From sequence record LR588166.1: DNA of 64,000 nt. The stretch is one strand, 5' to 3'. The position numbers were made by a program, and so were the translations under genes. The notes beneath the pieces were generated by a model. It was not told where the DNA came from and made no database searches. It worked only from the letters and a program-made list of their open reading frames with translations. This document shows, piece by piece, positions 1 to 35,100 of the stretch (positions within the stretch are counted from its first letter, which is position 1; each line of letters opens with the position of its first letter).

Positions 1-159
1 ACTAATCTTAGAACAAATATTCACTTGATTTTTCTCCCAATATAGTGTATGTCTATATTAGATAAGATTAAGTCTTGTTTGCTTGTTACATTTTATATGT
101 TGCAATGCTAAGGCAATGACAATATTATATGTACAGCAACACAAAACAGGAGATATAAC

Positions 160-465
160 ATGTCAGCAGAATTGAAGCGGTTGTTAGAGATTTTTCCAAC
201 CTTTAAATCATTCATTTATGCTAAAGGGGCATATGGCATTGATGTTTGGAAGGCTACAGGTAGTGTTACTTTGGAACAGGTAACCAATGCTGTTAATGCA
301 GGTAATGCAGAATGGCAATGTAAAGGTGATCCAACATGCAGCCTGGAACAAAACAGCATGTATATTTTCATTACTATTCAGGAACCAGACTACACAGGAA
401 TGGTTGATATTGATATTTGTGTAAAGATTACTAACGGTAATGAAGTAAGTTATCAAATAGCATAA
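160..465 (+). CDS. hypothetical early protein (101 aa)
   Basis: ACAGGAG RBS before ATG; followed by a terminator hairpin. Confidence 0.8.
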   Translation: MSAELKRLLEIFPTFKSFIYAKGAYGIDVWKATGSVTLEQVTNAVNAGNAEWQCKGDPTCSLEQNSMYIFITIQEPDYTGMVDIDICVKITNGNEVSYQIA

Positions 466-466
466 T

Positions 467-496
467 AAAGGAAAGGGGCAACTGCCCCTTTCCTTA
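467..496. terminator. intrinsic terminator hairpin
   Basis: AAGGAAAGGGGCA-ac-TGCCCCTTTCCTT inverted repeat right after the stop. Confidence 0.8.
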
Positions 497-506
497 TGAC
501 CATTGA

Positions 507-527
507 TGCAAACTATTCTTATTTGCA
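507..527. promoter_or_regulatory. conserved 21-bp Fur-box-like motif, copy 1
   Basis: TGCAAACTATTCTTATTTGCA, identical to 932..952; reverse strand matches the 21-bp Fur consensus at 13/21. Confidence 0.55.
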
Positions 528-601
528 CATCAAAAAAATATCTATTGAATTCTATTATTATGATGCTATTATATATAGTGTAATTAACTCGGAGTAAAGT
601 T

Positions 602-889
602 ATGCAACCTCTAAAGCAATTGCCACAAAACTACGCAATAATCACTCCAACTAGTGTTACTAATTTTAGCTGCACCTTTTCTGAAGCCTATTGCAAAATA
701 AAAGCAGAATGCAAAAACGTTTTCTGTTGGGTTCGTTGGGGTGACCACGGCGTTGCAATGAAGCGCCGAATTGATCCACCGTATGTAGTGTATCGAAACA
801 ACGGACGACAACGAAAAGCAGTTCTTGTAAACGTAGACAAAGCCCCTGTTAATTGGCAAGACGAACTTAAACAACTATACAAATGGTAA
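602..889 (+). CDS. hypothetical early protein (95 aa)
   Basis: GGAG RBS; followed by a terminator. Confidence 0.75.
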   Translation: MQPLKQLPQNYAIITPTSVTNFSCTFSEAYCKIKAECKNVFCWVRWGDHGVAMKRRIDPPYVVYRNNGRQRKAVLVNVDKAPVNWQDELKQLYKW

Positions 890-890
890 T

Positions 891-921
891 TAAGAAAAGG
901 GCTATTATAGCCCTTTTCTTA
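891..921. terminator. intrinsic terminator hairpin
   Basis: TAAGAAAAGGGCTA-tta-TAGCCCTTTTCTTA. Confidence 0.8.
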
Positions 922-931
922 TGACCGTTAA

Positions 932-952
932 TGCAAACTATTCTTATTTGCA
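932..952. promoter_or_regulatory. Fur-box-like motif, copy 2
   Basis: TGCAAACTATTCTTATTTGCA directly after the terminator. Confidence 0.55.
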
Positions 953-1070
953 CGATCCCGCGCTTATAACACAAGTATGTTACAAAAGCAAGAATAAAAT
1001 TAACTTGACACCTATATGTAGAATATAGCACAATGTGTTTATAAATTATATTACTACAGGAGTGTTAACC

Positions 1071-1442
1071 ATGTTCAAATGCAAATTGTTTGTAGTAGAT
1101 CCTGTTTATAACAACCTTTGCTACACTCAACAAATATGGCTCGATAGTGACATAAATGTGTGTAGCCAAATAAAGCGTATTATTTCTGACGTAGAATTGG
1201 CATGCGCAAACAGGATAGTAAATAATCCTCATAGTCCACTATGCGTTAAATCGGCAGCATTAAAAATGGTTATGGACGGGCGCATTGACATCGAACTCAA
1301 AGATGTCGATAGTTACGTTGATCAATATAAAGACATTCTTCCTAGCACAAATATTTTGGGTGTTTTTAAACCGACGTTTTTATCTAACTGGAAAGAAGAG
1401 TGTGAACTTTATTTCCTCACTTGTGTTGAAAAAGACAATTAA
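1071..1442 (+). CDS. hypothetical early protein
   Basis: Start moved to ATG 1071, which has an ACAGGAG RBS and is in frame with the 1035 ORF. Confidence 0.75.
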   Translation: MFKCKLFVVDPVYNNLCYTQQIWLDSDINVCSQIKRIISDVELACANRIVNNPHSPLCVKSAALKMVMDGRIDIELKDVDSYVDQYKDILPSTNILGVFKPTFLSNWKEECELYFLTCVEKDN

Positions 1443-1453
1443 TATAATATAAT

Positions 1454-1741
1454 ATGGAATATGATTTAAAAAATATTGTTTCGAAGACTATCTTATCTAA
1501 TAAAATTAAGATAGTCTCTTTACGTACTGTAGTAAAAACTCAGTATAAAAGAGTAGACTTCCATTATAAGATAGAATGTGAAAATAGTTCTGCAAAACGT
1601 AATTTGGTGCTTGCCCGTATATGCAAACCATTAGAACACACATTAGGTTCAAAACTTGTTTATGTAGATATTGTGCCTATCAAGTTTAAGAAAGATGAAA
1701 TGCCATCTACTATTCTATCAGTAAGTGTAATGACCGATTGA
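1454..1741 (+). CDS. hypothetical protein (95 aa)
   Basis: ORF directly follows the previous gene; no clear SD. Confidence 0.6.
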   Translation: MEYDLKNIVSKTILSNKIKIVSLRTVVKTQYKRVDFHYKIECENSSAKRNLVLARICKPLEHTLGSKLVYVDIVPIKFKKDEMPSTILSVSVMTD

Positions 1742-1766
1742 TATTTGGATTTGATATCTGGAAATA

Positions 1767-1787
1767 TAATAGTAATTCTTATTTGCA
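1767..1787. promoter_or_regulatory. Fur-box-like motif, copy 3
   Basis: TAATAGTAATTCTTATTTGCA; reverse strand 14/21 to Fur consensus. Confidence 0.5.
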
Positions 1788-1833
1788 ATTATAATAAATT
1801 CTTGTTTACTTTTAAAATAAAAGCAAATTCTAG

Positions 1834-1862
1834 TTGCATAGCTAGCGGCACTGTGCTAGTAT
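1834..1862 (+). promoter_or_regulatory. sigma70-type early promoter
   Basis: TTGCAT-17-TAGTAT with TG extended -10. Confidence 0.65.
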
Positions 1863-1892
1863 ATTAAAAAATAAAGACAGGAGTGTTATTAC

Positions 1893-2075
1893 ATGCAAAC
1901 CAAAGCAACCGAGTTGGCAGTAGGCGATGTTGTTTTCTACAACGGCATGAAAATGACTATCCAGAAAATTTCTAAAGGTCGGTGTGCAATAGATATTACA
2001 CTAGTAAATACTTTGGCTAAACTCACATCTTATGTGACAGTCGACTACGACGAAGAATTTGAAGAAGTATTATAA
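1893..2075 (+). CDS. small hypothetical protein, possibly SH3/KOW-like
   Basis: ACAGGAG RBS; ELAVGDVVFYNG pattern; ends at a bidirectional terminator. Confidence 0.7.
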   Translation: MQTKATELAVGDVVFYNGMKMTIQKISKGRCAIDITLVNTLAKLTSYVTVDYDEEFEEVL

Positions 2076-2091
2076 TGCAGAAATTATAGTC

Positions 2092-2122
2092 ATAAGAAAA
2101 GGGGCAATGCCCCTTTTCTTAT
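2092..2122. terminator. bidirectional terminator
   Basis: ATAAGAAAAGGGGCA-a-TGCCCCTTTTCTTAT between convergent genes. Confidence 0.85.
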
Positions 2123-2358
2123 AGTCCCAACAAATGTTTGCCACTTTTGACTTGCATCATACGCACTTTCTTTTTGCGCATTTGCGTTCTTACGTTCAGG
2201 CTGTTGGGACCTTTGAAGCTATACAGTATTTCAGTAGTCCCGTCTTCATAGTTGCGTACCACATTTGCAACAATTTGACTGCCTTCCTGGAACGCTTCGA
2301 TAAACACGCAGTAATTGAAATTTTCCTTGTTAGCGTTATGTGCGCGTAGTTGCATCAT
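2119..2358 (-). CDS. hypothetical protein (79 aa)
   Basis: GCAGGAG RBS on the minus strand; upstream TTGCAT..TATACT promoter; ends in the terminator. Confidence 0.75.
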   Translation of the reverse strand: MMQLRAHNANKENFNYCVFIEAFQEGSQIVANVVRNYEDGTTEILYSFKGPNSLNVRTQMRKKKVRMMQVKSGKHLLGL

Positions 2359-2502
2359 TTTCTGTTACTCCTGCGTTGTTTTGCTTTGTTATGTGTAGTA
2401 TACGCTATGTGTGTACTAATGCAAGAATTTTCTTCCATTTTCTTTCAAATAAAATGTTATTAGCATCTATTCTGTTATAACATTTTCTACGACTTCATGT
2501 TT

Positions 2503-2529
2503 TGCAAATAAGAATTAATCGCATTTGCA
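2503..2529. promoter_or_regulatory. Fur-box-like motif, copy 4 (inverted, extended)
   Basis: TGCAAATAAGAATTAATCGCATTTGCA; first 21 nt 13/21 to consensus; oriented with the minus-strand gene. Confidence 0.55.
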
Positions 2530-2712
2530 TTCCTACCTATCTGCCTAAAATTTAGGCAGCCTGGGTGATTGTCTCCCCCCGCCCTATTACTGGTCTCTGT
2601 ATAAAGATAATAGCACATTTGTATCTGCATGCAAGCATTTTTTGTAGAATTTTTCTCTTGACATTCCTTGCTGTAGGCTACATTATGCACACACAGAGCA
2701 GGAGATACCATT

Positions 2713-3093
2713 ATGGCACTCATAGCATTAGTAGCAACCGCATATGACAAAGAAGGCGATAAGTTCGACTATGTTCGATATCTTAAAGCTCATATCAATT
2801 TTGTTTCTGCTCAAGATCAACTGAAAGAATGGATCAAAAACAAAATTGATGCAAGTATAGCAGAAGTTAAAATCGGATTACGTGCAGAAATCGAAGTATT
2901 GGCCTATTTGGGAAACTATATAAGCCATAGTCAACGGATTATTAGTCCCGCTGGGATCATCATGTACATTGTTCTTGATGAGAAGTATGTTAATGAACTT
3001 CACGGTCAAATTTCTAATGCAATTGATTGTGAAGAAAAGAAACATGTAATAAAGAAAGAAGAAAACGTCACTTATATTGATTTTAAAAAATAA
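2713..3093 (+). CDS. hypothetical protein (126 aa)
   Basis: AGCAGGAG RBS; TTGACA upstream at 2658. Confidence 0.8.
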   Translation: MALIALVATAYDKEGDKFDYVRYLKAHINFVSAQDQLKEWIKNKIDASIAEVKIGLRAEIEVLAYLGNYISHSQRIISPAGIIMYIVLDEKYVNELHGQISNAIDCEEKKHVIKKEENVTYIDFKK

Positions 3094-3094
3094 C

Positions 3095-3123
3095 TTGCAT
3101 TAGCTGTAATGTATATGTATTAT
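3095..3123 (+). promoter_or_regulatory. sigma70 promoter of the candidate sRNA
   Basis: TTGCAT-17-TATTAT. Confidence 0.7.
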
Positions 3124-3129
3124 GTACTC

Positions 3130-3286
3130 AAGTTTGCAGCAAGACGTATTAATTTGTTTTGCTGTTAGTTGTAACTCCTGCTACCAAGTATGTGTTGAGC
3201 TAATGCTCCTGACTTGGTTCTTGGTACACTGGTTTGGGTGTACCGTTCTTGAGCTGCAAAGGGCTTGCCCGGCGCAGCTTTTTTTT
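3130..3286 (+). ncRNA. candidate ~157-nt structured small RNA
   Basis: Own promoter; stems 3136-45/3156-65, 3184-89/3212-17, 3223-29/3238-44; terminator AGCTGC..GGG-CTTG-CCC..GCAGCT plus T8; no RBS-led ORF. Confidence 0.7.
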
Positions 3287-3302
3287 GACTAATATTATTC
3301 AT

Positions 3303-3332
3303 TTGACAAAAAATAATAATTAAAAATATAAT
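3303..3332 (+). promoter_or_regulatory. sigma70 promoter
   Basis: TTGACA-18-TATAAT. Confidence 0.7.
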
Positions 3333-3366
3333 AGCTTAGTGTATAACTTCCCATATTAGGCTAATT

Positions 3367-3738
3367 ATGAAATTTGTTATTGCTGCTATTGCATTGTCTT
3401 TGTCCACACTAGTTTCTGCAGAATCTATTTCTGAAGTTAAGATAACTAAAGAAACATGCCTTACACTTCTGGAATTATCTAAGATTCATGTTGATATGGT
3501 AGTAAATGAACATATGAATGCAATACAAATTGCATCTCATATGGATATTGTATCTAATTTGTATAAGAATAATAATAGTAAATGGCTTGCATTCTTGCAG
3601 GCTCAAGCAAATATTTCAAAATTAATTGATGACGTATATGAGTTTTCATCTACTGAAGAAAGAAAGATTATTCCTCTAGCCATATTTAACGGTTGTATGG
3701 AAAGAGTTGGTAATACTTTTGAAATATATAAGAAATAA
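3367..3738 (+). CDS. putative exported/periplasmic protein
   Basis: Sec-type signal peptide pattern MKFVIAAIALSLSTLVSA|E. Confidence 0.75.
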   Translation: MKFVIAAIALSLSTLVSAESISEVKITKETCLTLLELSKIHVDMVVNEHMNAIQIASHMDIVSNLYKNNNSKWLAFLQAQANISKLIDDVYEFSSTEERKIIPLAIFNGCMERVGNTFEIYKK

Positions 3739-3739
3739 T

Positions 3740-4051
3740 ATGTATGTATATGTAGTCCACGGAATAGTCAATACAGGCGTTGAGACTAATATTTGTGATA
3801 TAGAACGTTACGTTACAGTTAACGACTTCCATGCTGTAGCAAAGTTTCTTAATTTTAAAGAACATATAGCAGCAAACCCAAACTTATATATACGATTAAT
3901 TACTACTGGATTGAATACTAAAAAGAACATATTAGAATTAAACTTATCGAAAAAAGAATATGTAGTATCGGGTTTTAGAGTTACATCAACTAATATAAAT
4001 GAATGCATTGAATATTACCTGTGTAGAAGGATATTTAAGTTACATGATTGA
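3740..4051 (+). CDS. hypothetical protein
   Basis: ATG 3740 lies 1 nt after the upstream stop; in frame with the 3707 ORF. Confidence 0.65.
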   Translation: MYVYVVHGIVNTGVETNICDIERYVTVNDFHAVAKFLNFKEHIAANPNLYIRLITTGLNTKKNILELNLSKKEYVVSGFRVTSTNINECIEYYLCRRIFKLHD

Positions 4052-4169
4052 ATTTATATTAAAATCCCTTTTATTAACTTCAGTTGTCAGTGTTGGCATA
4101 CTACTGATATTCATTATTATTTCACTGTTAATGTTTGGCTTAGCACCGATAGTTCCATTCCTTATTTAA
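4044..4169 (+). CDS. 41-aa membrane peptide (not in ORF track)
   Basis: MIEFILKSLLLTSVVSVGILLIFIIISLLMFGLAPIVPFLI; overlaps the upstream stop by 8 nt. Confidence 0.6.
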   Translation: MIEFILKSLLLTSVVSVGILLIFIIISLLMFGLAPIVPFLI

Positions 4170-4190
4170 TTTTAATTATTTGCAAGCAAA

Positions 4191-4217
4191 TGCAAATGCG
4201 AACAATTCTTATTATCC
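4191..4217. promoter_or_regulatory. Fur-box-like motif, copy 5 (extended)
   Basis: TGCAAATGCGAACAATTCTTATTATCC; reverse of 4197..4217 is 14/21 and includes GATAAT. Confidence 0.6.
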
Positions 4218-4383
4218 AGCAGGCCACTGTACCTAATCTTCGTTAGATAAAATCTATTAGAATCTACACAGTCCATTAAAACGTTCAATTGTACATGGTG
4301 GCCAGATCTGCATATACTACACACATGAAGCAAGCAAACAGCGCTTCATAAACAAACCCAAATACAGCTAGGAGTTCCAAATC

Positions 4384-4821
4384 ATGACCAAAGCAACCGT
4401 TACCGTCGAGCAATCCGCAATCAAACTGGTCCGCCGCAACCTGGAAGGGCACCGGCAAGCCCTGCTGCTGAACGGCGTCGAAGTAGGCAGCAGCGAAGCG
4501 TTCTACAAGACCAAAACCCAGCGCACCTGGTCGGCGAAGATCGACGCCAACATCAACGGCAAGGACATCGTCCTCGAACAGAAAGGTGTGTTCAGTGCGA
4601 TCCGGATCGCCCGGGCGATGGAACAAGCAATCCTGTTCATCCTGACCGACGGCAAAGAAGGCTCCGAGATGCCGGCTAGCACGCTGAGCAAGGAAGAACA
4701 AGCCCACAACCTGGTCAAGGCAGTAGTCCAGGTCGCCGCCCACGCTGTCCAGTCCGGCGCCGCTGCCCCGGCGAAGAAAGGCAGCTCGAAGAAGCGCAAA
4801 GAAGCCCAGCCGGAAGCATAA
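4384..4821 (+). CDS. hypothetical protein, GC-rich, basic C-terminal tail (145 aa)
   Basis: AGGAG RBS; G/C-ending codons; terminator follows. Confidence 0.85.
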   Translation: MTKATVTVEQSAIKLVRRNLEGHRQALLLNGVEVGSSEAFYKTKTQRTWSAKIDANINGKDIVLEQKGVFSAIRIARAMEQAILFILTDGKEGSEMPASTLSKEEQAHNLVKAVVQVAAHAVQSGAAAPAKKGSSKKRKEAQPEA

Positions 4822-4834
4822 TCCGGACTACACC

Positions 4835-4860
4835 GAGAAAGCACCGAAAGGTGCTTTCTC
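4835..4860. terminator. intrinsic terminator hairpin
   Basis: GAGAAAGCACC-GAAA-GGTGCTTTCTC. Confidence 0.8.
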
Positions 4861-4872
4861 TATGACTGTTAA

Positions 4873-4926
4873 TAGCAAATATTCTTATTTACATCTAATC
4901 TGAAATAATAATAACTCTTATTTACA
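4873..4926. promoter_or_regulatory. two Fur-box-like motifs, copies 6 and 7
   Basis: TAGCAAATATTCTTATTTACA (12/21) and TAATAATAACTCTTATTTACA (14/21); the second overlaps a TTTACA -35. Confidence 0.5.
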
Positions 4927-4977
4927 AATCATACTGAATAGTGTATTTTACACACTAAACATTGTAGGTAATACAAA

Positions 4978-5466
4978 TTGAATATATTTGTGACTGACAC
5001 AAATCCTTATGTATGTGCCAAACATCATTGTGATGTTCATCTAAGAAAGATGATAGTAGAAACAGCACAATTGTTAAGCACTACTCATTATATAATAAAC
5101 GGATATACTCCTGCATATAAACCTACTCATAAAAATCACCCATGTGCCGTTTGGATTAGAGAAAGTTCAAATAACTATAAATGGACTTATGAACTTCTTA
5201 CAAGTCTTATAAATGAATTTGAATATAGATTTGACAAACAACATGCAACTAAAATTCACCTTTCGTCATTAAAAACTATACCAAAACTCCCTAATATAGA
5301 AAGAACAGAGTTTGTCTTAGTTATGCCAGACGAATTTAAAACAGATAATGTAACACATTCATATCAGATATATTTGAATAACAAATTTAAAGAATGGGCA
5401 TCGAGATCTAACAGACCCATTTATGCTACATATACAAAGACACCTAAACCATATTTTATTAGTTGA
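4978..5466 (+). CDS. denV: pyrimidine-dimer DNA glycosylase/endonuclease V family protein
   Basis: MNIFVTD..P..CA..HCD.H..KMIVETAQLLST and Y(K)PTH.NHPC..W motifs of the Pyr_excise family. Confidence 0.8.
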   Translation: MNIFVTDTNPYVCAKHHCDVHLRKMIVETAQLLSTTHYIINGYTPAYKPTHKNHPCAVWIRESSNNYKWTYELLTSLINEFEYRFDKQHATKIHLSSLKTIPKLPNIERTEFVLVMPDEFKTDNVTHSYQIYLNNKFKEWASRSNRPIYATYTKTPKPYFIS

Positions 5467-5482
5467 AATATAATAAAAATGA

Positions 5483-5511
5483 TTGACATGTACATAAGAT
5501 CATATTATGCT
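5483..5511 (+). promoter_or_regulatory. sigma70 promoter
   Basis: TTGACA-17-TATGCT. Confidence 0.75.
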
Positions 5512-5538
5512 GTATAAAACAGCAAGGAGTAGATATAC

Positions 5539-5772
5539 ATGTACCGCAAACTGAATACAAATCCGCGCCCAATGCCAAAAACAAAGGCAATTCCAACTAA
5601 ATTTGTCATTCAGTACACTGCACGGAATAAAGCAACAGAAAGTTTGTTCAAAAAAAGAACTATTACATTACATGCGTTTGGGCGTCTCGATGCACAAACA
5701 CTCCTATCGAAACATATCCGAAAAAATAATTTGGAATTAGGTGTAATTATTGATTTCGGTGAAACAGTTTAG
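5539..5772 (+). CDS. hypothetical basic protein (77 aa)
   Basis: AAGGAG RBS, own promoter and terminator. Confidence 0.8.
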   Translation: MYRKLNTNPRPMPKTKAIPTKFVIQYTARNKATESLFKKRTITLHAFGRLDAQTLLSKHIRKNNLELGVIIDFGETV

Positions 5773-5780
5773 TTAGTAAC

Positions 5781-5811
5781 AAAGGAAAGGGGAATTAATC
5801 CCCTTTCCTTT
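5781..5811. terminator. intrinsic terminator hairpin
   Basis: AAAGGAAAGGGGA-atta-atCCCCTTTCCTTT. Confidence 0.8.
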
Positions 5812-5823
5812 TATTAAGTCAAA

Positions 5824-5850
5824 TGCAAATACAAATTATTCTTATTTGCA
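5824..5850. promoter_or_regulatory. Fur-box-like motif, copy 8 (extended)
   Basis: TGCAAATACAAATTATTCTTATTTGCA; 13/21 for 5830..5850; a TTGTAT-17-TACACT promoter follows at 5865..5893. Confidence 0.55.
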
Positions 5851-5932
5851 CAGATCAGACCCTGTTGTATTCTCCATTACGTGGTGCTACACTGTAAACA
5901 GTTGCACAAAACCATAAGCAGGAGTGTTAAAA

Positions 5933-6229
5933 ATGAACCAAGTGAATAACACCGAAGAGATGGCGTACATCCGCAATCTGCTTCAGTCTGAAGATGCAGT
6001 AAAATACTTTGCTCGCAAAGTCAACGACCTCATCGGCAAAGAGGCATTCGAGCGGCTCCTTAACGGCTTGTCCTACGAGGAGAATGTGGCACTGAACCTG
6101 ATGATCGAAAACAATCTCGTTAGCTTGCACAGCGATGGCTTTGTCGGTATCAAGTTCGATCTCAAACTGGAAGACGTGCGGTCAGACGTCGACTTCACCG
6201 ACGAAGGCTTCGAGCTAGAGGAAGAGTGA
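5933..6229 (+). CDS. hypothetical acidic protein, GC-rich
   Basis: AGCAGGAG RBS before ATG 5933. Confidence 0.8.
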   Translation: MNQVNNTEEMAYIRNLLQSEDAVKYFARKVNDLIGKEAFERLLNGLSYEENVALNLMIENNLVSLHSDGFVGIKFDLKLEDVRSDVDFTDEGFELEEE

Positions 6230-6366
6230 TGGCTTACTACAATGAATTCTGAATACTGAAAAGTGCCTAAGAAGTAATTCCAGTTGTATCTAAAACACTA
6301 TATGTTATTATACATATAGTGTTTTTATTTCTTATAATTATATTCAATAATAATGGTAAAATATAT

Positions 6367-6690
6367 ATGATTGAAGTAATTAAATGCATTATATGTAATG
6401 AATCACCCCGACCCGGTGCATTTGCAGCATTTATTACTCAAATGCGTCAAGTAGTAAAACCTCATGCAACTATAACTAGTTGGAATATTCTGCCCGGCAT
6501 TAATGATGATCCAACTAGTTATATTCATGCATTCAGTATAAAATCAAAAACAGCATACGATATTAATCAAGCGATTACCTTATTACTAATGTCATTATAT
6601 AATGCTAGTGAATATAAGACTAACTACATACCTACTTCGTTTAAAGACTATGAATCTACAATAAAGCATTTATCTAAGATCAAACAATAG
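6367..6690 (+). CDS. hypothetical protein with N-terminal CxxC
   Basis: In frame with the 6319 ORF; start uncertain. Confidence 0.55.
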   Translation: MIEVIKCIICNESPRPGAFAAFITQMRQVVKPHATITSWNILPGINDDPTSYIHAFSIKSKTAYDINQAITLLLMSLYNASEYKTNYIPTSFKDYESTIKHLSKIKQ

Positions 6691-6754
6691 CCAGTTGCAT
6701 ATTTACAAATATACATGTATGCTAATATGTATACACAATCATGAGTACAATATC

Positions 6755-6910
6755 ATGACAAAAGAAATTGCTTTTACTGAAGGATTAAAAGCAGGCGCTC
6801 AAATAAAAGAAGGCAAAGCTATCCTAACTGACTTCTTTCGATATTTCAATTCCTTACCAACTAATATGAGAACTTCTTTTATTATCGGTATCAAAACCGG
6901 TAGGAACTAA
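6755..6910 (+). CDS. small hypothetical protein
   Basis: TTGCAT-17-TATGCT promoter at 6695..6723 places the start at ATG 6755. Confidence 0.6.
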   Translation: MTKEIAFTEGLKAGAQIKEGKAILTDFFRYFNSLPTNMRTSFIIGIKTGRN

Positions 6911-6997
6911 TAAGCATATTAATTTTCATATTTTGGTAGACAAAGGTACTCACTGGATGCATACTGTATACATACAGAACATACGGAGTACAAAGGG

Positions 6998-7267
6998 ATG
7001 GACGCGCACTGCCTGCTTAGCCTTATCGAAGACCTCCCTATAGCTGTCTTCGGTAGCACAATGGATATTGTTCATCGAGTCAATTTTGAAGCTCTGGACA
7101 ATGCCGCGCACACCGACGGAGTAAAAGTCCACGAAGATGGAACCAACCGTTATACGGACGCTTTTGTTGATTGTTGGCTCCGCAGCGTCGAAACAGTTTT
7201 GGCCTGTTGCGATTTTGTGACTGAGGATGCCGCTAAGTGGTATACCGAGCACGGTGTCAAGTTTTGA
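6998..7267 (+). CDS. hypothetical protein, GC-rich
   Basis: GGAG upstream; coding-like composition. Confidence 0.6.
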   Translation: MDAHCLLSLIEDLPIAVFGSTMDIVHRVNFEALDNAAHTDGVKVHEDGTNRYTDAFVDCWLRSVETVLACCDFVTEDAAKWYTEHGVKF

Positions 7268-7298
7268 CATCCTCTACCTGCGCCTGCAGATAAAAAGG

Positions 7299-7327
7299 TT
7301 GACGTAGACTAGCAATGGACACATAAT
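7299..7327 (+). promoter_or_regulatory. sigma70 promoter, duplicated at 8695
   Basis: GTTGACG-17-CATAAT-AATTACAAC. Confidence 0.75.
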
Positions 7328-7361
7328 AATTACAACACAACCAGCCCAGGAGGGCAAAACT

Positions 7362-7511
7362 ATGTGTAACATTCAATGCATGAACAGCAAAGCCGGCGAG
7401 TCCTACGCATGGATTTGGAGCGATAGTGATAGCGATATCTGCTACGAAGTCATCTTCCGGCATGGCCAAGTCCTCACCCAGGTTTGGCTCGGCTATGATA
7501 TCGTAGCCTAA
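7362..7511 (+). CDS. 49-aa hypothetical protein (not in ORF track)
   Basis: AGGAGGG RBS; MCNIQCMNSKAGESYAWIWSDSDSDICYEVIFRHGQVLTQVWLGYDIVA; hairpin 7521..7543 follows. Confidence 0.7.
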   Translation: MCNIQCMNSKAGESYAWIWSDSDSDICYEVIFRHGQVLTQVWLGYDIVA

Positions 7512-7560
7512 CACCAACTAAAGCCCCGTCCCAGGCGGGGCTTCACTGAAGGAAAGGATC

Positions 7561-7770
7561 ATGATCGAACAACTGAAAGACATGCTCGTAGCGCAACGCA
7601 TGCGCATGAACCAACTCGAAAAACTGCGCTACACCGGACGGGTCGCTAGCGAGTTGCATGCCCACGCCAGAGAATTGTGTGAAGCCTTGGAACTGGCAAT
7701 TGCAAATGCCCAGTGCCTGGAAATGCGCAAGTTCGAAGAAGCCGCCCTGCACGCCCTGTTCGCACAATAA
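7561..7770 (+). CDS. hypothetical helical protein (69 aa)
   Basis: AAGGA RBS; GC-rich codons. Confidence 0.75.
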   Translation: MIEQLKDMLVAQRMRMNQLEKLRYTGRVASELHAHARELCEALELAIANAQCLEMRKFEEAALHALFAQ

Positions 7771-7803
7771 CCCACCACGCACAACCCGACAAGGAAACCA
7801 ACC

Positions 7804-8295
7804 ATGAGCACTACCATCCCCGATTCGATTCATCCGAGTGACCTTCCCGAAATCAGCCAGGGGCTGGCTGATGGAACCTTCTTTGTCCGCCATTGGCTCA
7901 ATGGCAAGGAATACGCCTACGTCGATCTCGGCAAAAGCGCCGAGTTCACTGGAGAATGGGGCGAGTATGGGCTGGACGTGGACAGCGCCGTTAGCTATCG
8001 AGACGGAGCTTCGAACACGATCGCTATGGCTGAAGCTGGCAGCCCGATTGCCAAGCAAGCTATGGAGATCGGAGAAGGCGTATTCATTCCTTCTGTTCTG
8101 GAACTGGCTCTTCTGTTCTCAGCAAATCAAGCAGGCGAGCTGTCTGGTTTCGCAGATCGCTGGTACTGGTCGAGTTCGCAGTACTCCGCCTGCGGCGCCT
8201 TCCGCATGCATTTCGGTGATGGCGAGGCTAGTGTCGCCATCAAGAGCAGCGCCTGGTTGGTCCGCCCCGTCCGCAAGATTCTCATTCTTCAGTAA
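7804..8295 (+). CDS. DUF1566 (Lcl C-terminal, C-type-lectin-fold) protein
   Basis: IPSVLEL...WYWSSSQYSA..AF.M.F.DG......K.....VRPVR signature. Confidence 0.8.
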   Translation: MSTTIPDSIHPSDLPEISQGLADGTFFVRHWLNGKEYAYVDLGKSAEFTGEWGEYGLDVDSAVSYRDGASNTIAMAEAGSPIAKQAMEIGEGVFIPSVLELALLFSANQAGELSGFADRWYWSSSQYSACGAFRMHFGDGEASVAIKSSAWLVRPVRKILILQ

Positions 8296-8372
8296 TCTAG
8301 CCCCGGAGATAACACGATGAACCTGCACCTCTCCAAGCATTGTTTGCGCCAGTGCGCTACTAAGGAACAGTC

Positions 8373-8621
8373 ATGAGTATTGCAAGCTACCTCTTGTTGT
8401 CCACTATTGTCTTCAACAACAACACCTACGCTCGTTCGACGACAGTGGACACCATTGTGGTTCGTGACCTCAGCAAGGAAGACTGCGAGGCGCTCAAGCG
8501 TGAGCGCGAAGCAGTTGTGAAGAACATCCGGGCAAGGAACTTCGGTAGCTCTGGTGATACGAGCGGTATCGCCGTGGGCTTTTCCAAACACAGTTGCACA
8601 AAGATGGAGGGTACGAAATGA
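8373..8621 (+). CDS. hypothetical protein (82 aa)
   Basis: AAGGA RBS; hydrophobic N-terminus. Confidence 0.6.
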   Translation: MSIASYLLLSTIVFNNNTYARSTTVDTIVVRDLSKEDCEALKREREAVVKNIRARNFGSSGDTSGIAVGFSKHSCTKMEGTK

Positions 8622-8694
8622 CTCAACTGGCACCGGCGAGCAAACATTACTCGGAAGGTGCTAGCTGAACGACTGGCGGAACAATAAATAAAAG

Positions 8695-8723
8695 TTGACG
8701 TGTCCGGGCGAAGGGCGCATAAT
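8695..8723 (+). promoter_or_regulatory. sigma70 promoter, second copy
   Basis: GTTGACG-17-CATAAT-AATTACAAC. Confidence 0.75.
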
Positions 8724-8762
8724 AATTACAACGCAACACAGCAAGCCCCGGAGGGCGCAACC

Positions 8763-8963
8763 ATGAGCCAGATCGTAGATGTCAAGCAAATTGCAATTGA
8801 TGCAAACCGTCGCCCTGCCTACAATGCGGTCATGGTGCGCTGGTTGATGCAGGAAGCTGAAATGCACCGTAGCTGTGGGCGCACCGCTACCCTGTTCTGC
8901 ATCGTTCGCAACCGCCCCGACGGCACACAGCGCCAGCTCGTGCAGCTTGTGGCTAGCGAGTAA
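8763..8963 (+). CDS. hypothetical protein (66 aa)
   Basis: GGAGGG RBS before ATG 8763; in frame with the 8700 ORF. Confidence 0.7.
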   Translation: MSQIVDVKQIAIDANRRPAYNAVMVRWLMQEAEMHRSCGRTATLFCIVRNRPDGTQRQLVQLVASE

Positions 8964-8993
8964 CCTCAATCACCCTATGCCCGGGAGGCCGTC

Positions 8994-9158
8994 ATGAATG
9001 CTGCACTGGCCAGACTTCAGAACGAACGTTGCATGTTACTTCGCCGGATGCTTTGCAGCAAATGGCACGGATTCTGTTTTGCAGGTCACCCCTGGGCAGA
9101 ACAAACCCGCAATCTGCACAACGAATCCAAGTGCATCCGAGAACATTACAGTAAGTAA
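8994..9158 (+). CDS. 54-aa hypothetical protein (not in ORF track)
   Basis: GGGAGG RBS; MNAALARLQNERCMLLRRMLCSKWHGFCFAGHPWAEQTRNLHNESKCIREHYSK. Confidence 0.65.
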   Translation: MNAALARLQNERCMLLRRMLCSKWHGFCFAGHPWAEQTRNLHNESKCIREHYSK

Positions 9159-9192
9159 TCCAAACCCACTGGATCTTACTGAGGATAAGATA

Positions 9193-9297
9193 ATGACCTA
9201 CGCAGAACTAATAAAGAAACTACATAACATAGAAGCTGGTCATTATCTTTCCAATAATGAAGTTAAGTTTCAAAACACAGGCAAGCAGGAGAACTAA
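9193..9297 (+). CDS. 34-aa hypothetical peptide
   Basis: GAGGA RBS before ATG; 3' end of the 8998 ORF. Confidence 0.45.
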   Translation: MTYAELIKKLHNIEAGHYLSNNEVKFQNTGKQEN

Positions 9298-9298
9298 A

Positions 9299-9595
9299 AT
9301 GAATTGCGAACATTTTTTCCTCAGTGCAGTAAAAGAACTTCTGTCCCTGTACCACATTAAGAGTACTATTCAACCGTCTTCTGATAACCTCGAAGAATTG
9401 GTAGTAGTTATTACCGATACTGCTTTTGGTACTATCAGATATGTTGGCAATAACACTGGATCAGTTATGTGTTATACTATGGGCGGTAATTACCCGTTCT
9501 ATGACACTGAGTGTTATTCCAACCGAACTATGATAGATTGTGTTATGTTGATATCAGTTTGGTATTCAATGTTCCCGACATTCGATAATAAGTAA
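9299..9595 (+). CDS. hypothetical protein
   Basis: AGCAGGAG RBS before ATG 9299. Confidence 0.75.
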   Translation: MNCEHFFLSAVKELLSLYHIKSTIQPSSDNLEELVVVITDTAFGTIRYVGNNTGSVMCYTMGGNYPFYDTECYSNRTMIDCVMLISVWYSMFPTFDNK

Positions 9596-9851
9596 TATAA
9601 TGGTTGCCCTATATAGTGTATGATGTTAGTTGTATACTATATAGAATAATTCTATTAACTGGGAGGGATTAATAAAAATATTTTCTTGACAATAGCAGGT
9701 ATAGGATAATTCTATTATACTGAAAATTGTTATAGAAAAATATAGTTGACAAATTTTGAAAGTGATGAATTCCAACGCCGGGTGGCTGTAAGCTGAGACG
9801 GTTGACATTCGGTGAGTGGTGGATTGTTACGCGGGTAGATTTTGAAATTCA

Positions 9852-20537: not shown

Positions 20538-23500
20538 CTACGGAGTTAATCCACTTCCAGGTCTGTTTTGTAAGAATATAGCCCAGGGAGTTGTACTTAG
20601 AGCAAGTCCACCGTTATTATTTTCCCATATGTACTTACCTGTATCTTCTTGTTCTTGTTTATACGAACCGTCAAATACCCTAGTATATAGCGGCACAGTT
20701 GTATCTCCGTTTGTTCCGGTATATACAGATGTCCCTAATGATCCCCTAGTCAATCCATGTAATTTATTACCGCGTTTATATAAGAATTCTATACGTTCTG
20801 TTCCTATCCAAACTACACCGGGTTTACTACTAGACGGATCTACTATTGCAGATGCATCTACTAACTCTATAGATTTATCTGTAAGTTTTAATGGTTTAGC
20901 TAATCTAGTGCTATAATAATCAGAAATCCTAACATAGTGTGTTTCGCCCATTTCATCTAGGTGTACCCTAAAACTTAGTGGTTTGGCAGGATATTTGATT
21001 ACAACATTATCACCTTGCATTGTAACTGGATTTATGAAATTGTGTTGTTCATTGAATACAGCTACCCACGAATTATTAACAATATCGGTTACTTTTTGAA
21101 TGTTTGTTTCAGTCCAATCGATTCGTATAATATCGCCTGCGTTGAGAGTACCCTTATATACTACTAATAACTTAGCATTATCACCTGTTATATTTGTGAA
21201 TTCTATAGTGTAGTCTTTGTCTTTAGTTTTACTAATTCCATTTATATAAACTGTCTCTCCTACAAAATTACGTATACTAGTATCTACAGTGAAAAGTTTT
21301 GTATTTGTATACAACATTTCTTTACTCTTACGAGTATATAAATTATTAGACACACTGATCATTCTTTTGTTAGCAGCAACAAACATGTCTATTGTCTGCA
21401 ACTTATATTCAGATGTAGTAACAGAAGTTATGTTATATTTGTTCATTACATACGAAACATAATCATCTAACTTCATTATAGAATAAGATTGATATTTAAC
21501 TGTAATTACAGTTCCTGCACTCGGTGCAATTTCAAAATTAATAACAAGTTCAGGAGTAATTCCACTATTATCTACAACTACTGTATAGCCATACATTGCA
21601 ACTCCACTCGAATAAACACCCTGGACTCTGTTGGGGAGAATATTCATACCTGTATGTATCATAGTATCTACACCATTTGCAGTAATATCTACGAACTTGT
21701 ATGTAAGTTGTCCCGATGCCTGTGCAACTACTTCGTCAGGATTAGCAATAGTTGGCATATCTATAGGTAGTAGATACACACTATCTGCATTTTCTGGAGA
21801 ATCTATGCTTGGATCCCAAGCAAATGTATCCCATGTGTTTATATCTTTATTTTGTTTTGTATTTCTTAAATCTACAGTTATGTATCCTTGAGTATTATCC
21901 CTTACTACTGAATTAGTATCAAACCTATAATCGTTAGCTACAGTAGTTTGTGAAGTATAATTATCTTTATAGACTACTGATATAATATCACCTGTACTGA
22001 AACTAGTAGGATATGCAATGACTACGGTATTAATGCCGTTGTTATCTATATTAAACTTCAATTTGTCTTCAGTATTAGGATCTCCGTTTATAACTAACCC
22101 TATTATGTCCTGTAACACTATTTTTTCAGTTAATACTATTTTAACAAACGGATTCGAAGTATCTGTATTAGTAACAACATACTGAACTTCTGTAGTTTTC
22201 GCATTAGAATCTACAATAATAACCATATTCTCTGTAGGAGATACTAATGCTTGTTCTTCCGGGATTCCTTCTCTTACGTTAGTATCTTCAAAATATGCAC
22301 CATCTATTATAGGCTTACTAGTGTCACTGTTAAATGTATTAGTAACAGGATTAAAAGTAAACACTATTTCGTCACCTTCTACTGCGCCAGGAACTTCTAT
22401 AGATGTAAAATTAGAACCTTTTGTAGCAGTGTATTGTGTAGAAGATCCATTTAGTGTTACGCCAGTTATATCTACTACATATCGTATGACAAATGTTGTT
22501 TTTCCTTCCGATATAACTGTTGCACTTGTTTCAGTATAATTAGGAGTAATAACATACGTAGCAGTAGAGGCATCCCATGCATATTCGTCCCATTTTGTAC
22601 TATCCCACGGTCTGCTAAATATGTACTCAAAATCTTTAGCATCTATTACCTTACCTTCATAGTCACACCCATATTCGTCACCGAAACGTTCGTTGAATTG
22701 GAATAAAACATCTCTCTCGCCAGCTGAACTTTCGTATAGACGTTCAGTAAACGAACTGTATGGATATGAACCGTTTATGGGTGCGGCACTTAAAATATCC
22801 CGTTGCAGGTCAGTTTGATATAAGATATATCTTCCAGCGGCGCCAGAATATTGTAAGTATTCAGTCCATAATTGACGATTACCTTCTTGTATTGTGCCCG
22901 GTATACCCCAACGTAATTGACCCCACTTAGGAATACCCCAACCGCCTGCGATTTTACCAGCTGGATCTATTGCTAAATCAAATATAGGTTTAAGCACTTT
23001 ACCGGGTTGTCTAGCATTATATTCTAACCTCATTTCCTCTAACGGAGTTTGGGTGAATTCTGTACCAGAATATAATTTTATTTTAGATCCTATTTTAATA
23101 AGAGTATTCGATTTAAATGTTACTTGTAGATAGCCATTCTCGTTTATTTCTACATCATATTGCTCTTTAGTAATAGTTTTTCCATCTACCTTAATTTTCC
23201 AAACAGATTTTATATCAGTGTAGTTTACTATTATTACATCACCTGCATCAGGAGTAGAAGGAAGTATTATAAATGTTGCATTTAATATTGTAGTGAATGT
23301 GTAACCTTCTATTTCTTGCCCATTTATTGTTACAGATGTTATTCTAGAAATATCTTTATTAGCACCTAATTGATATTGAGAAATTCCATCTAATGCTATA
23401 AATTCATCATTAGGAGTATTTGCTATAAGAACTACTTGACCACCGGTACCGATAAATGTTTGGTCGCCTAAGTCTATATAATTCGGTTTAGTTATGTAAC

Positions 23501-32117: not shown

Positions 32118-35100
32118 TTAAATTCTCATATTCATTTCTGTTAAGTTATTTACTATCTCTACATTAGCTACAGTTGCAGTAGATATAAACAATTCATCTG
32201 ATTCTGCTCTAATTTGGAATAAATTACCAAATTTAGAAGTTTGTTCTATAGGTACTATAACAACCGAACCTATAACTCCCGCTAGGGTTTGGTGAATGTA
32301 TGCTGCTAATTCTGTATAATAGAATGATTCACCGAAATCCCAGTTGTTTATGTTAAAATATTCGTCTATTGCAGAAACAACTTTAGATTTTATTTCGTTA
32401 TCAGTTAAAGTAGTAGAACCTACTTTAACTACTTTGAATGTACATTTGTATTCTTCTCTTGCTTGCTGACCAAATAATACTTTAAATCTAGCAGGCTGGA
32501 ATACAATTTGGTCTGACAGCATTTTGTATGTACTAAGATCACCAAATTGTATTCTTAGTTCTTCAGTAGTAGGCGATTCAGGGAAACGTTCGATAGGTAA
32601 ATTTTGATTTTTCCATTTAAGGATATCGTCATAATACGATTGTGTTAAAGTTACCATATCTACAATATTACTTATACTAGGATCTATTCTGTTATCCGAA
32701 GGAGCATAATGTTTCCATTTATAATGCAACGGATAAAACTGAGAATCCTCATTCTGTGTATAACCCCTTCCGTTACTAACACTATGATCGTCATCAAACA
32801 CATATGATAATACAGCATAACTTGCAGTTAATGTCATAAACTGTGCTAATGAAGACGAATTAGCCTTCGCTGCGGTTATACCTGTTATTTCATTAATAGT
32901 TTGATTATTTCCATTGTTAATGCGTATTGTTTCAAAAATACGACTACCAGGAGAATCTAAATTCTGTGTTACAATATTTATTCCGTCATTTTCTATGCGT
33001 TCTATAAAAATAGTTGTCCCATCAACACTATTGTTACTATTATAATTATCAGAATATATTGCTTCTAATACTTTAGTCCTTAGTAATGATTTAAAAGATG
33101 ATTCTGCTGCACTTGCAATTAAAACCAAGTCCCTTGCAACAACATCATTATAATTAAAATCTAAACTATTAGGATTCTGTTGGCGAAGATCTAGCCAAGA
33201 TGCTTGCCATAATCTATTATATTCATATCCGTCGTAATCTGTAGTTTTTTCATGAAAAACTAAATCAGTAGGTGAAACAAATTGTTCGAAAATAAAAGTA
33301 TTATCTGGTATACCGTCTCTATCTCTATCTGCAGGAACTACTACTATTTTTCTAGGATCACTATAGCCGTCGGATTCTATAAATGTTTGGAAAGAATTCC
33401 AGACAATAGAATTACCCAATTGACCTTGATTAGAATAAAATATTCGTATAATATCGTTAACTTGTTGCCCTACGTATTCTGCATCTAAAACGCCAGCAGA
33501 TGCAGCGCCTGTTGGCAATGCACCCGGTAATAATATGCCGTTTTGCCAGTACTGAATTTCTTTAGGTAAAGTATCTCTGTATTTTAAAATTATTTTGTTG
33601 TCAGGATATGTTAAACTAACTATACCATTAACCAAACGCCATTGACCGTTTCCGATAAACTGCCAATTTTCTACTATAGTAGGACCTGTGTTAATTCCTA
33701 GTATTTCTATTTCATCTCTTTGTGCAGAACCAGTGTTTATGTCATATTCGGTTTCGTCTGTATCGTAATAAAATTCTACAGTACCGTTTGTTTCAAATAT
33801 AAACTTTGTTCCTCTTGATAAAAATGTATAATTATCTGTTTCAGTAGAATATGTTAAAACAAGCATCCAGTCTTTTCTAACTGCAGGCTGAGATAAAGAT
33901 AAATCGAATTCAAAATTATCTAAATTTGTAGTAGGTACGCCTAATACAATAAACCACGAACCTTCTGGATCTACATCTATATCGTACTTTAAACCAAATT
34001 CATTTCTTCTAAATAGTTGATTTGCTATATCTGTAGTTTCTTCTGTATCAAACGTTGTTTTATATCTAGGATATACACTATCTACATACCAATTTGCTGG
34101 AATTTCTATATCAAATACAAATAAACTTGCGTTTAATCTAGTTGCAATAAACTCATTATCTGTAGTTGCATCCCCTTGTGACACCGGGTTAGTAATACTT
34201 TTAACGGTTACTTCTTTATATTCTGTACCGTTTGTAAATTTAATTTTAGATCCGACGGAAAGGAATCTAAATTCCCCTTCTGGTCTATTATTATAATTCG
34301 TAGGATATATATAGTTGGTAGATCCTTTAACTAAGTATCCTGTATTAGTTGCATCAGACGATGGATACGTTACCCACTTTGCTTGAGTAGAAGTGTATCT
34401 AAATATATTAGGAACTCCGGGACGAACAATAGAGGTATTTATGGGGTTAGGAGTTGGGTTTTGTCTATATCTTATATACTCACTCAGGTAATTATTCCAA
34501 TAAAAGTTGATTAAATCTTGATTTCTAATAAATGTCTGTAAATTATTTCTAACTACTATATTTTCGCTAACTAATTTATCACCCATTGCTACTGTAGTAG
34601 AAGGCACCGTACTCTGATTGTATATAGAACCATCTTCGCCGAAAATATTTAAATTTTGATGAAATCCGGTGGGATCGTTAATATCTATGTATCTAGAATG
34701 TCCAGAATGAGTTCTATTGATAGCATGAACTTTTGCAATAGAACTACCCTGCGTTAACGGGAAAACATTATAATCCTCGTTGTTTACCATTCTATCTTGG
34801 GTATAGTATACTTGCGGTGCTCTGGTTTTTATCTCATCGTTTGTTTCTGTAGGCGAAGAATTAGATATAGTTTGTTCTAAACTAAAAATTAATCGAAGAT
34901 CATATTGTTGAGAATCCGCACCTATATACGGTATTACTAATTCCATCCCGGATGCTTCTTCTGGACGTAAAGTAAAAGTAGTGTTAGATGAAACTCTATA
35001 CCATACTCTAAATGTACCTGTAGGAATAGTACCGAAATTTCCATCAGAGAATTTAACAGAAATTTGATCATTGACTCTAGAAACTACTTCAAATATATTT

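Follow-up and report, generated by a model that had tools for sequence, protein, structure and literature searches.

Enterobacterial small RNAs (sRNAs) derived from 3' untranslated regions (3'UTRs) are either transcribed from an internal promoter of their own, like DapZ and MicL, or processed, like CpxQ and SroC. C/U-rich seeds directed at Shine-Dalgarno (SD) sequences are found in RNAIII and the Rsa RNAs of Staphylococcus aureus with their UCCC loops, in RoxS and FsrA of Bacillus subtilis and in PrrF of Pseudomonas, and the icaR 3'UTR of S. aureus carries an anti-SD of the sequence UCCCCUG. In phage T4, the endoribonuclease RegB inactivates early phage mRNAs by way of a GGAG-type SD that is largely absent from later genes. 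We know of very few sRNAs of virulent phages with a known function, and of none described for the jumbo-phage family treated here, which includes therapy candidates and phage Paride. Phage and prophage RNAs that occlude ribosome-binding sites (RBSs) comprise c4 of P1/P7, sar of P22 and DicF of the Qin prophage (review PMC12197685). In a 2025 preprint (PMC12697547), octamers resembling the anti-SD and lying hundreds of bases downstream in B. subtilis mRNAs are reported to pair with the RBS, promote decay and block initiation. As for Pseudomonas phage PA5oct, four ncRNAs have been annotated from RNA-seq, at 8263-8498, 21951-22401, 103065-103368 and 246116-246734 (Lood et al. 2020, PMC7318152), among which ncRNA001 was experimentally abundant (PMC7318152); the count was five in the 2018 preprint (bioRxiv 10.1101/406421) against four in the 2020 paper (PMC7318152).

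The window analysed here, a stretch of 64 kb, is the final 64 kb of LR588166.1, the genome of Pseudomonas phage vB_PaeM_MIJ3, a PA5oct-like jumbo phage. It contains an unannotated phage RNA that is very likely a functional structured element and a credible candidate sRNA, with a regulatory role that we infer (Table 1). The 1.2 kb surrounding the element are 100% identical to vB_PaeM_MIJ3 and 97-99% identical in nine further distinct Wroclawvirus genomes, and a sensitive blastn search against phages found the element only in these ten genomes. They form the comparison set used throughout (n=10: MIJ3, PA5oct in two records, PAC2, Paride, Deifobo, Cassandra, Ettore, Callisto, 30-2 and 30-3). In PA5oct, the counterpart of 3095-3286 is 32668-32859, with the RNA part at 32704-32859, and this locus lies within the 39-kb terminal repeat that carries the early genes. 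The coordinates match none of the four PA5oct ncRNAs (compared with PMC7318152). The stretch is left blank in the GenBank records of PA5oct, MIJ3, Callisto, 30-2 and 30-3, and a hypothetical protein of 55, 56 or 64 aa is annotated there in five records, namely Paride, Deifobo, Cassandra, Ettore and PAC2. Rfam covariance models gave no match at gathering thresholds across the whole window, and with E up to 10 the sole match in 3000-3400 was a chance miRNA (E = 5.6). ARAGORN found no tRNA or tmRNA, blastn found no paralogue of the element in the window or in PA5oct 1-40 kb, and our literature search found no publication on this element.

Table 1. Features of the candidate sRNA locus and its predicted pairing partners (positions in the 64-kb window)
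Feature	Position	Strand	Description
Candidate sigma-70-type promoter	3095..3123	+	TTGCAT 3095-3100, 17-nt spacer, TATTAT 3118-3123
Candidate small RNA, ~151-156 nt	3131..3286	+	Predicted +1 (A3130/A3131) to U-tract; from fold and RNA-seq contigs
Stem-loop 1	3136..3165	+	11 bp, 8-nt loop; MFE and centroid structures
Linker with seed ACUCCUGCU (3174-3182)	3166..3182	+	17 nt, unpaired
Stem-loop 2, with second CUCCUG at 3206-3211	3183..3218	+	From fold; variant 3196 unpaired
Stem-loop 3	3223..3244	+	8 bp, 6-nt loop; invariant
Intrinsic terminator	3251..3286	+	Hairpin 3251-3280 with internal loop, GGG-CUUG-CCC cap, U8 at 3279-3286
56-codon ORF	3122..3292	+	Judged not coding
Upstream early gene MIJ3_00357 (PA5oct EST35_0095)	2713..3093	+	mRNA continues into the element, no terminator between
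Promoter of next gene (3367-3738)	3303..3332	+	Perfect consensus TTGACA-18-TATAAT
SD of upstream gene 2713	2697..2704	+	AGCAGGAG, 8-nt complement; candidate cis and trans target
SD region of gene 5933	5917..5925	+	AGCAGGAGT, perfect 9-nt complement
SD region of gene 9299	9284..9291	+	AGCAGGAG, 8-nt complement; top site of unbiased sliding scan
SD region of gene 2119-2358	2367..2374	-	GCAGGAGT, 8-nt complement; best cofold, -16.5 kcal/mol

Several observations on the neighbourhood are recorded here in their own right. The gene at 3367-3738 has at least 30-fold the depth of its neighbours in infection RNA-seq; its product of 123 aa has a hydrophobic N-terminus and belongs to no family, its SD is weak, and its variability is the highest of the neighbourhood (8.6% of sites). 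The gene at 2119-2358 (-) is the only minus-strand gene in the early block and ends at a 15-bp hairpin (2091-2123) that resembles a bidirectional terminator. Moreover, two GC-rich islands stand out from the 34% GC of the genome, at 4401-4800 (60%) and 7200-9200 (50-56%). The latter spans about 2 kb with a single annotated gene (7804-8295), and the islands may have been acquired or may contain genes or RNAs missing from the annotation; Pfam returned nothing solid for them.

A promoter had been claimed in a preliminary description of the locus, and both hexamers with their 17-nt spacer are indeed in place. They amount to an 8/12 consensus match, which is worthless as evidence because matches of that quality occur about 13 times per kb. 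The stricter pattern TTGnnn-16..18-TATWAT is scarcer, with 22 occurrences on the window's + strand. The first 11 kb contain eight of these, the present one included, and of the remaining seven, six directly precede annotated early genes. None of the 10 genomes has a change in the -10 hexamer, and the variants in the promoter region fall at 3099 and 3110. As for the other end of the transcript, the terminator is the only strong hairpin followed by at least six T on the + strand in the first 11 kb by our own criteria, and it may also insulate the strong promoter downstream.

We placed RNA-seq contigs on 2650-3800; four runs from 2020 that contain the region apparently belong to the PA5oct infection study. 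In run X25, a single unbroken contig covers 2905-3261 at a depth of 1538, with the upstream gene at about 1050-1090, the next contig (3235-3390) at 150 and the downstream gene at 7,000-57,000, contig depth being a poor measure of expression. The contig ends in Illumina adapter sequence at 3261 and 3264, so many short fragments must end within the terminator hairpin. Thus a stable hairpin and a U-tract are accompanied by a roughly tenfold loss of transcript across them, and the 3' end is backed both by this drop and by the adapter-tagged ends. In run X3, one contig bridges 2650-3470. We conclude that the element is transcribed on the + strand in infection and that its terminator is functional. 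Because the X25 contig runs unbroken from the upstream gene, the element is at least the 3'UTR of that gene.

Evidence of a separate, shorter RNA comes from other data. Run X9, which belongs to another study and bears another organism label, yielded a single contig of 151 nt at exactly 3131..3281, beginning 7-8 nt past the -10 hexamer and ending with the third U. Since 151 nt is a common read length, only its 5' end counts as an independent coincidence. The X13 contig, from an Ettore-like variant, begins at 3079, upstream of the predicted +1. Moreover, seven unrelated runs with varied organism labels (X9, X12, X13, X27, X28, X30 and X31) contain near-identical sequence words from 3100-3300 and essentially none from the flanks. 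These reads are notable given the roughly 30-fold higher abundance of the downstream gene in a normal infection. They suggest a stable RNA that outlasts the mRNAs, and may reflect low-level Wroclawvirus infection with such an RNA, or carry-over. A transcript of about 155 nt had been anticipated in the preliminary description; the X9 contig agrees with it, and the PA5oct contig is continuous with the upstream gene. Taken together, we consider a discrete species of about 150 nt reasonably likely, and a moderate sigma-70 promoter of its own is probably a further source of the RNA.

The predicted three stem-loops and the terminator with its CUUG cap and U8 were reproduced by folding. For 3130-3286 the minimum free energy (MFE) is -55.6 kcal/mol, compared with -41.5 ± 3.5 kcal/mol for shuffled sequences (z = -4.0), and none of 200 shuffles was as stable. 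Covariation, which had been named together with folding as a check, was absent: of the 41 base pairs, 40 are constant in the 10 genomes, one has a change in a single partner (G·U to A-U) and none in both partners. The lack of compensatory changes is due to the close relatedness of the genomes (at least 97% identical), so that the structure rests on thermodynamics. Distant relatives were not found in exact-pattern scans of IMG/VR, GTDB genomes and JGI metagenomes, nor beyond Wroclawvirus by sensitive blastn against phages, nor in plasmids, and protein-guided locus searches of IMG/VR with both neighbouring genes returned no further relatives. In fact, the family of this phage consists of a single genus.

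Even among such close relatives, the element is more conserved than the adjoining intergenic DNA. The density of variable sites in the 10 genomes is 3.2% for the element (3131-3286), compared with 3.7% for the upstream CDS, 8.6% for the downstream CDS and 9-11% for the two flanking intergenic stretches. Five sites vary in total. Four of them, 3196, 3219, 3220 and 3273, have P(unpaired) of at least 0.93, with 3219 and 3220 located in the linker preceding stem-loop 3; the fifth, G3146A in Deifobo, is the sole variant of stem-loop 1 and turns a closing G·U into A-U. This pattern fits selection on the fold, at a rough chance estimate of about 0.08 with five sites. The linker 3166-3182 is invariant in all 10 genomes, an observation of low power with relatives at least 97% identical.

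The anti-SD seed described earlier does lie in an unpaired linker, with P(unpaired) of 0.82-0.95 for its ACUCCU part (3174-3179) and 0.40-0.65 for its GCU part. A second CUCCUG had also been pointed out; it is present and mostly base-paired within stem 2. The occurrence of two CTCCTG in 156 nt has a probability of about 5e-4, a local estimate that carries no correction for a scan of the full window. All seven complementary SD sites of the preliminary description were recovered, including CAGGAG(T) ahead of the starts of genes 160, 1071 and 1893. We surveyed the SD context in window 1-9600 and in PA5oct 1-40 kb. In promoter-proximal early genes the SD is strong, stands in the context (A)(G)CAGGAG(U/A) and follows short A/C-rich leaders, and the linker matches their consensus AGCAGGAG(U). 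Most other genes, including downstream operon genes and many later genes, have weak SDs. As a separate observation, a second copy of the octamer ACTCCTGC occurs at 5107-5114 (+) on the sense strand inside gene 4978-5466; internal anti-SD-like sequences of this kind are reported to be depleted from bacterial coding sequences.

The accessible and conserved linker offers 8-9-nt complements to six start regions. Among the 256 nonamers of the form N-CTCCT-NNN, the seed ranks first for start regions with at least 8 contiguous complementary nt (6 of 152) and 7th-13th at 7 or more, these statistics being post hoc and the target start regions possibly related by duplication. Any exposed CUCCU would score well against SDs. 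When the whole RNA was cofolded, 24 of 151 start regions reach a ddG of -10 kcal/mol or lower, against 8 of 250 coding controls, and the top seven duplexes all use 3166-3182. In a sliding scan of 16 kb of the + strand, 16 of the 25 top windows contain start regions, compared with 6.4% of all windows, and genes 9299, 2713, 5933, 160 and 4384 lead the list. Duplexes of the linker have energies of -12 to -19 kcal/mol, as against -7 to -10 kcal/mol for the 16S tail, the sequence of which was taken from general knowledge. These results render the proposed mechanism plausible, short of proof.

Our leading reading, held tentatively, is that of a 3'-UTR-type phage sRNA acting in trans to occlude the phage's SDs and perhaps also, in cis, that of the upstream gene. 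The RNA, from 3131 to 3281-3286, would share its intrinsic terminator with the mRNA of early gene 2713-3093. Its three stable hairpins and terminator are predicted to leave the linker single-stranded and ACUCCUGCU exposed, which complements both the core SD (AGGAG) and the extended context (A)(G)CAGGAG(U) of promoter-proximal early genes. The linker would then pair with the SD regions of these genes much more tightly than does the 16S rRNA tail, and such pairing would block 30S binding and possibly destabilise the mRNA. Several early mRNAs could be reached in trans, and the upstream gene's read-through mRNA in cis. We infer that the RNA has a discrete 5' end, that it pairs in vivo and that this pairing has a regulatory effect. 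A trans-acting SD repressor had also been the proposal of the preliminary description, which is partly supported; the elements of it that held are a non-coding, transcribed, terminated and conserved RNA with an anti-SD fitting the early SD context, and a start mainly at its own promoter, translational repression in trans and a purpose in early-gene shut-off or host silencing are hypothetical.

The strongest competitor takes the element for no more than a structured 3'UTR with terminator belonging to the upstream gene, in which the hairpins shield the mRNA from 3' exonucleases, the terminator insulates the strong promoter 3303-3332 from upstream transcription and the CUCCU is incidental. The contig that continues from the gene at similar depth and drops tenfold just before a perfect-consensus promoter agrees with it, as do the weak promoter match and the lack of covariation. 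However, in an early region packed this tightly, a terminator would not require three extra hairpins and 190 nt. The linker does not vary where flanking intergenic DNA varies at 9-11%, and among the 256 variants the seed has the flanks that best suit the SD contexts of the phage itself. The X9 contig that begins at the predicted +1 and the several runs with the element and without its flanks also speak against it. On balance, a plain 3'UTR seems somewhat unlikely. Even if it were the right answer, five hypothetical-protein ORF calls would be corrected, and a functional terminator and insulator would be mapped in the early region.

Next in order is an action confined to cis, whereby the anti-SD linker folds back on the SD of its own mRNA, about 480 nt upstream, and limits translation and stability. 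Both partners do reside on one transcript, with no terminator between them and with contigs that bridge them. The complement to this SD is perfect over 8 nt and extends to about 15 bp (ddG -14.8 kcal/mol, using 3166-3182), and pairing of anti-SD-like 8-mers with an RBS hundreds of nt away is described in the preprint cited above (PMC12697547). Yet genes 5933, 9299 and 2358- are complemented equally or better, and the signs of a separate short species do not suit a purely local role. We regard this restriction to cis as unlikely; cis and trans action are compatible and not mutually exclusive.

Slightly behind stands the possibility, also improbable, that the true targets are mRNAs of the host P. 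aeruginosa, or that the RNA serves as a sponge for an Hfq-type host RNA-binding protein, the match to phage SDs being a by-product. The seed includes the generic anti-SD core, with which many host SDs would pair, and a hairpin followed by a 3' U-tract, here U8, is the usual Hfq-binding module. Set against this, the flanks of the seed fit the extended SD of the phage best among the 256 variants.

The element is non-coding. It is very improbable that ORF 3122-3292, or a shorter ORF within it, encodes a small protein, in spite of the calls in the five records named above, since its ATG (3122) sits inside the -10 hexamer without an SD, its stop (3290-3292) is lost by T3290C in six of the 10 genomes and lies past the U-tract, an extra T shifts the frame in Ettore, its product has no Pfam or PHROG match, and it is unannotated in PA5oct and MIJ3 although the curation of PA5oct was guided by RNA-seq. 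The stop loss and the frameshift explain why the records annotate 55, 56 or 64 aa, and transcripts that end at the terminator would not include the stop, which lies beyond the U-tract. Looking up the exact protein sequence of the ORF returned phage Paride only. Two further candidates were rejected. A leader or riboswitch of the downstream gene is at odds with the perfect promoter which that gene has past the terminator, and a CRISPR-repeat mimic, a tRNA-like RNA or a type III antitoxin repeat RNA was set aside, with no repeats on inspection and no tRNA found by ARAGORN.

A bolder extension of the sRNA reading, which we consider unlikely, is that of a ribosome-mimicking shut-off factor, one sRNA silencing the whole immediate-early class through its (A)GCAGGAG(U) signature, to which the exposed anti-SD would bind far more tightly than 16S rRNA. 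If true, it would be an RNA-based counterpart of T4 RegB, and PA5oct ncRNA001, with its exposed ACCUCCUA, might be a second member of the system. Should the element act as we propose, the phage would control a whole temporal gene class through a shared extended SD signature, and an RNA regulator would be added to the annotation of PA5oct-like genomes.

How the element relates to described systems can be set out by group. First, like the enterobacterial 3'UTR-derived sRNAs DapZ, MicL, CpxQ and SroC, it directly follows a coding gene and shares its intrinsic terminator; it may be transcribed from an internal promoter as well as by read-through of the parent mRNA, and its short, conserved, unpaired seed precedes structured hairpins on the 3' side. 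However, there is no sequence relationship to them (no Rfam match), and the element is encoded by a virulent jumbo phage. Second, like c4, sar and DicF it is a short structured phage RNA with an exposed segment predicted here to pair around the RBS, and c4 likewise targets mRNA of its own phage. Those three are gene-specific antisense or near-antisense RNAs of temperate phages, whereas the element, which has no homology to them, comes from a lytic jumbo phage, many early genes of which are matched by its generic extended anti-SD.

Third, the element shares with icaR and the B. subtilis anti-SD octamers a pyrimidine-rich anti-SD in the 3' part of a transcript, complementary to an SD of the same transcript. 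In contrast to these, it also appears as a separate short species and fits the SDs of other genes equally well, and its folding in cis is predicted. Fourth, as in RNAIII and the Rsa RNAs, RoxS and FsrA, and PrrF, an exposed C/U-rich motif is available for the G-rich SDs of several mRNAs, but the motif lies in a linker instead of hairpin loops, no homology exists and the targets would be viral. With RegB there is a functional analogy only: strong (C)AGGAG SDs are likewise concentrated in the promoter-proximal early genes, but an RNA-based equivalent of this protein nuclease is hypothetical.

Finally, the element shares its phage lineage with PA5oct ncRNA001-004 and its terminal-repeat early region with ncRNA001 and ncRNA002 (PMC7318152). 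It differs from ncRNA001-004 in its coordinates, has no sequence similarity to them, and its locus is absent from the published record. ncRNA001 (MK797984.1 8243-8522) has a TTTACA-17-TATACT promoter, an intrinsic terminator and a folding z of -4.1, and close to its 5' end an apical loop displays ACCUCCUA, identical to the 16S anti-SD core. Possibly it is the second RNA of this phage to bear an anti-SD, which hints that exposed anti-SD motifs may recur among its non-coding RNAs. In comparison with all these systems, the element is a credible new, unannotated phage small RNA of the 3'-UTR type, and the occlusion of SDs by it is a proposal drawn from the predicted pairing.
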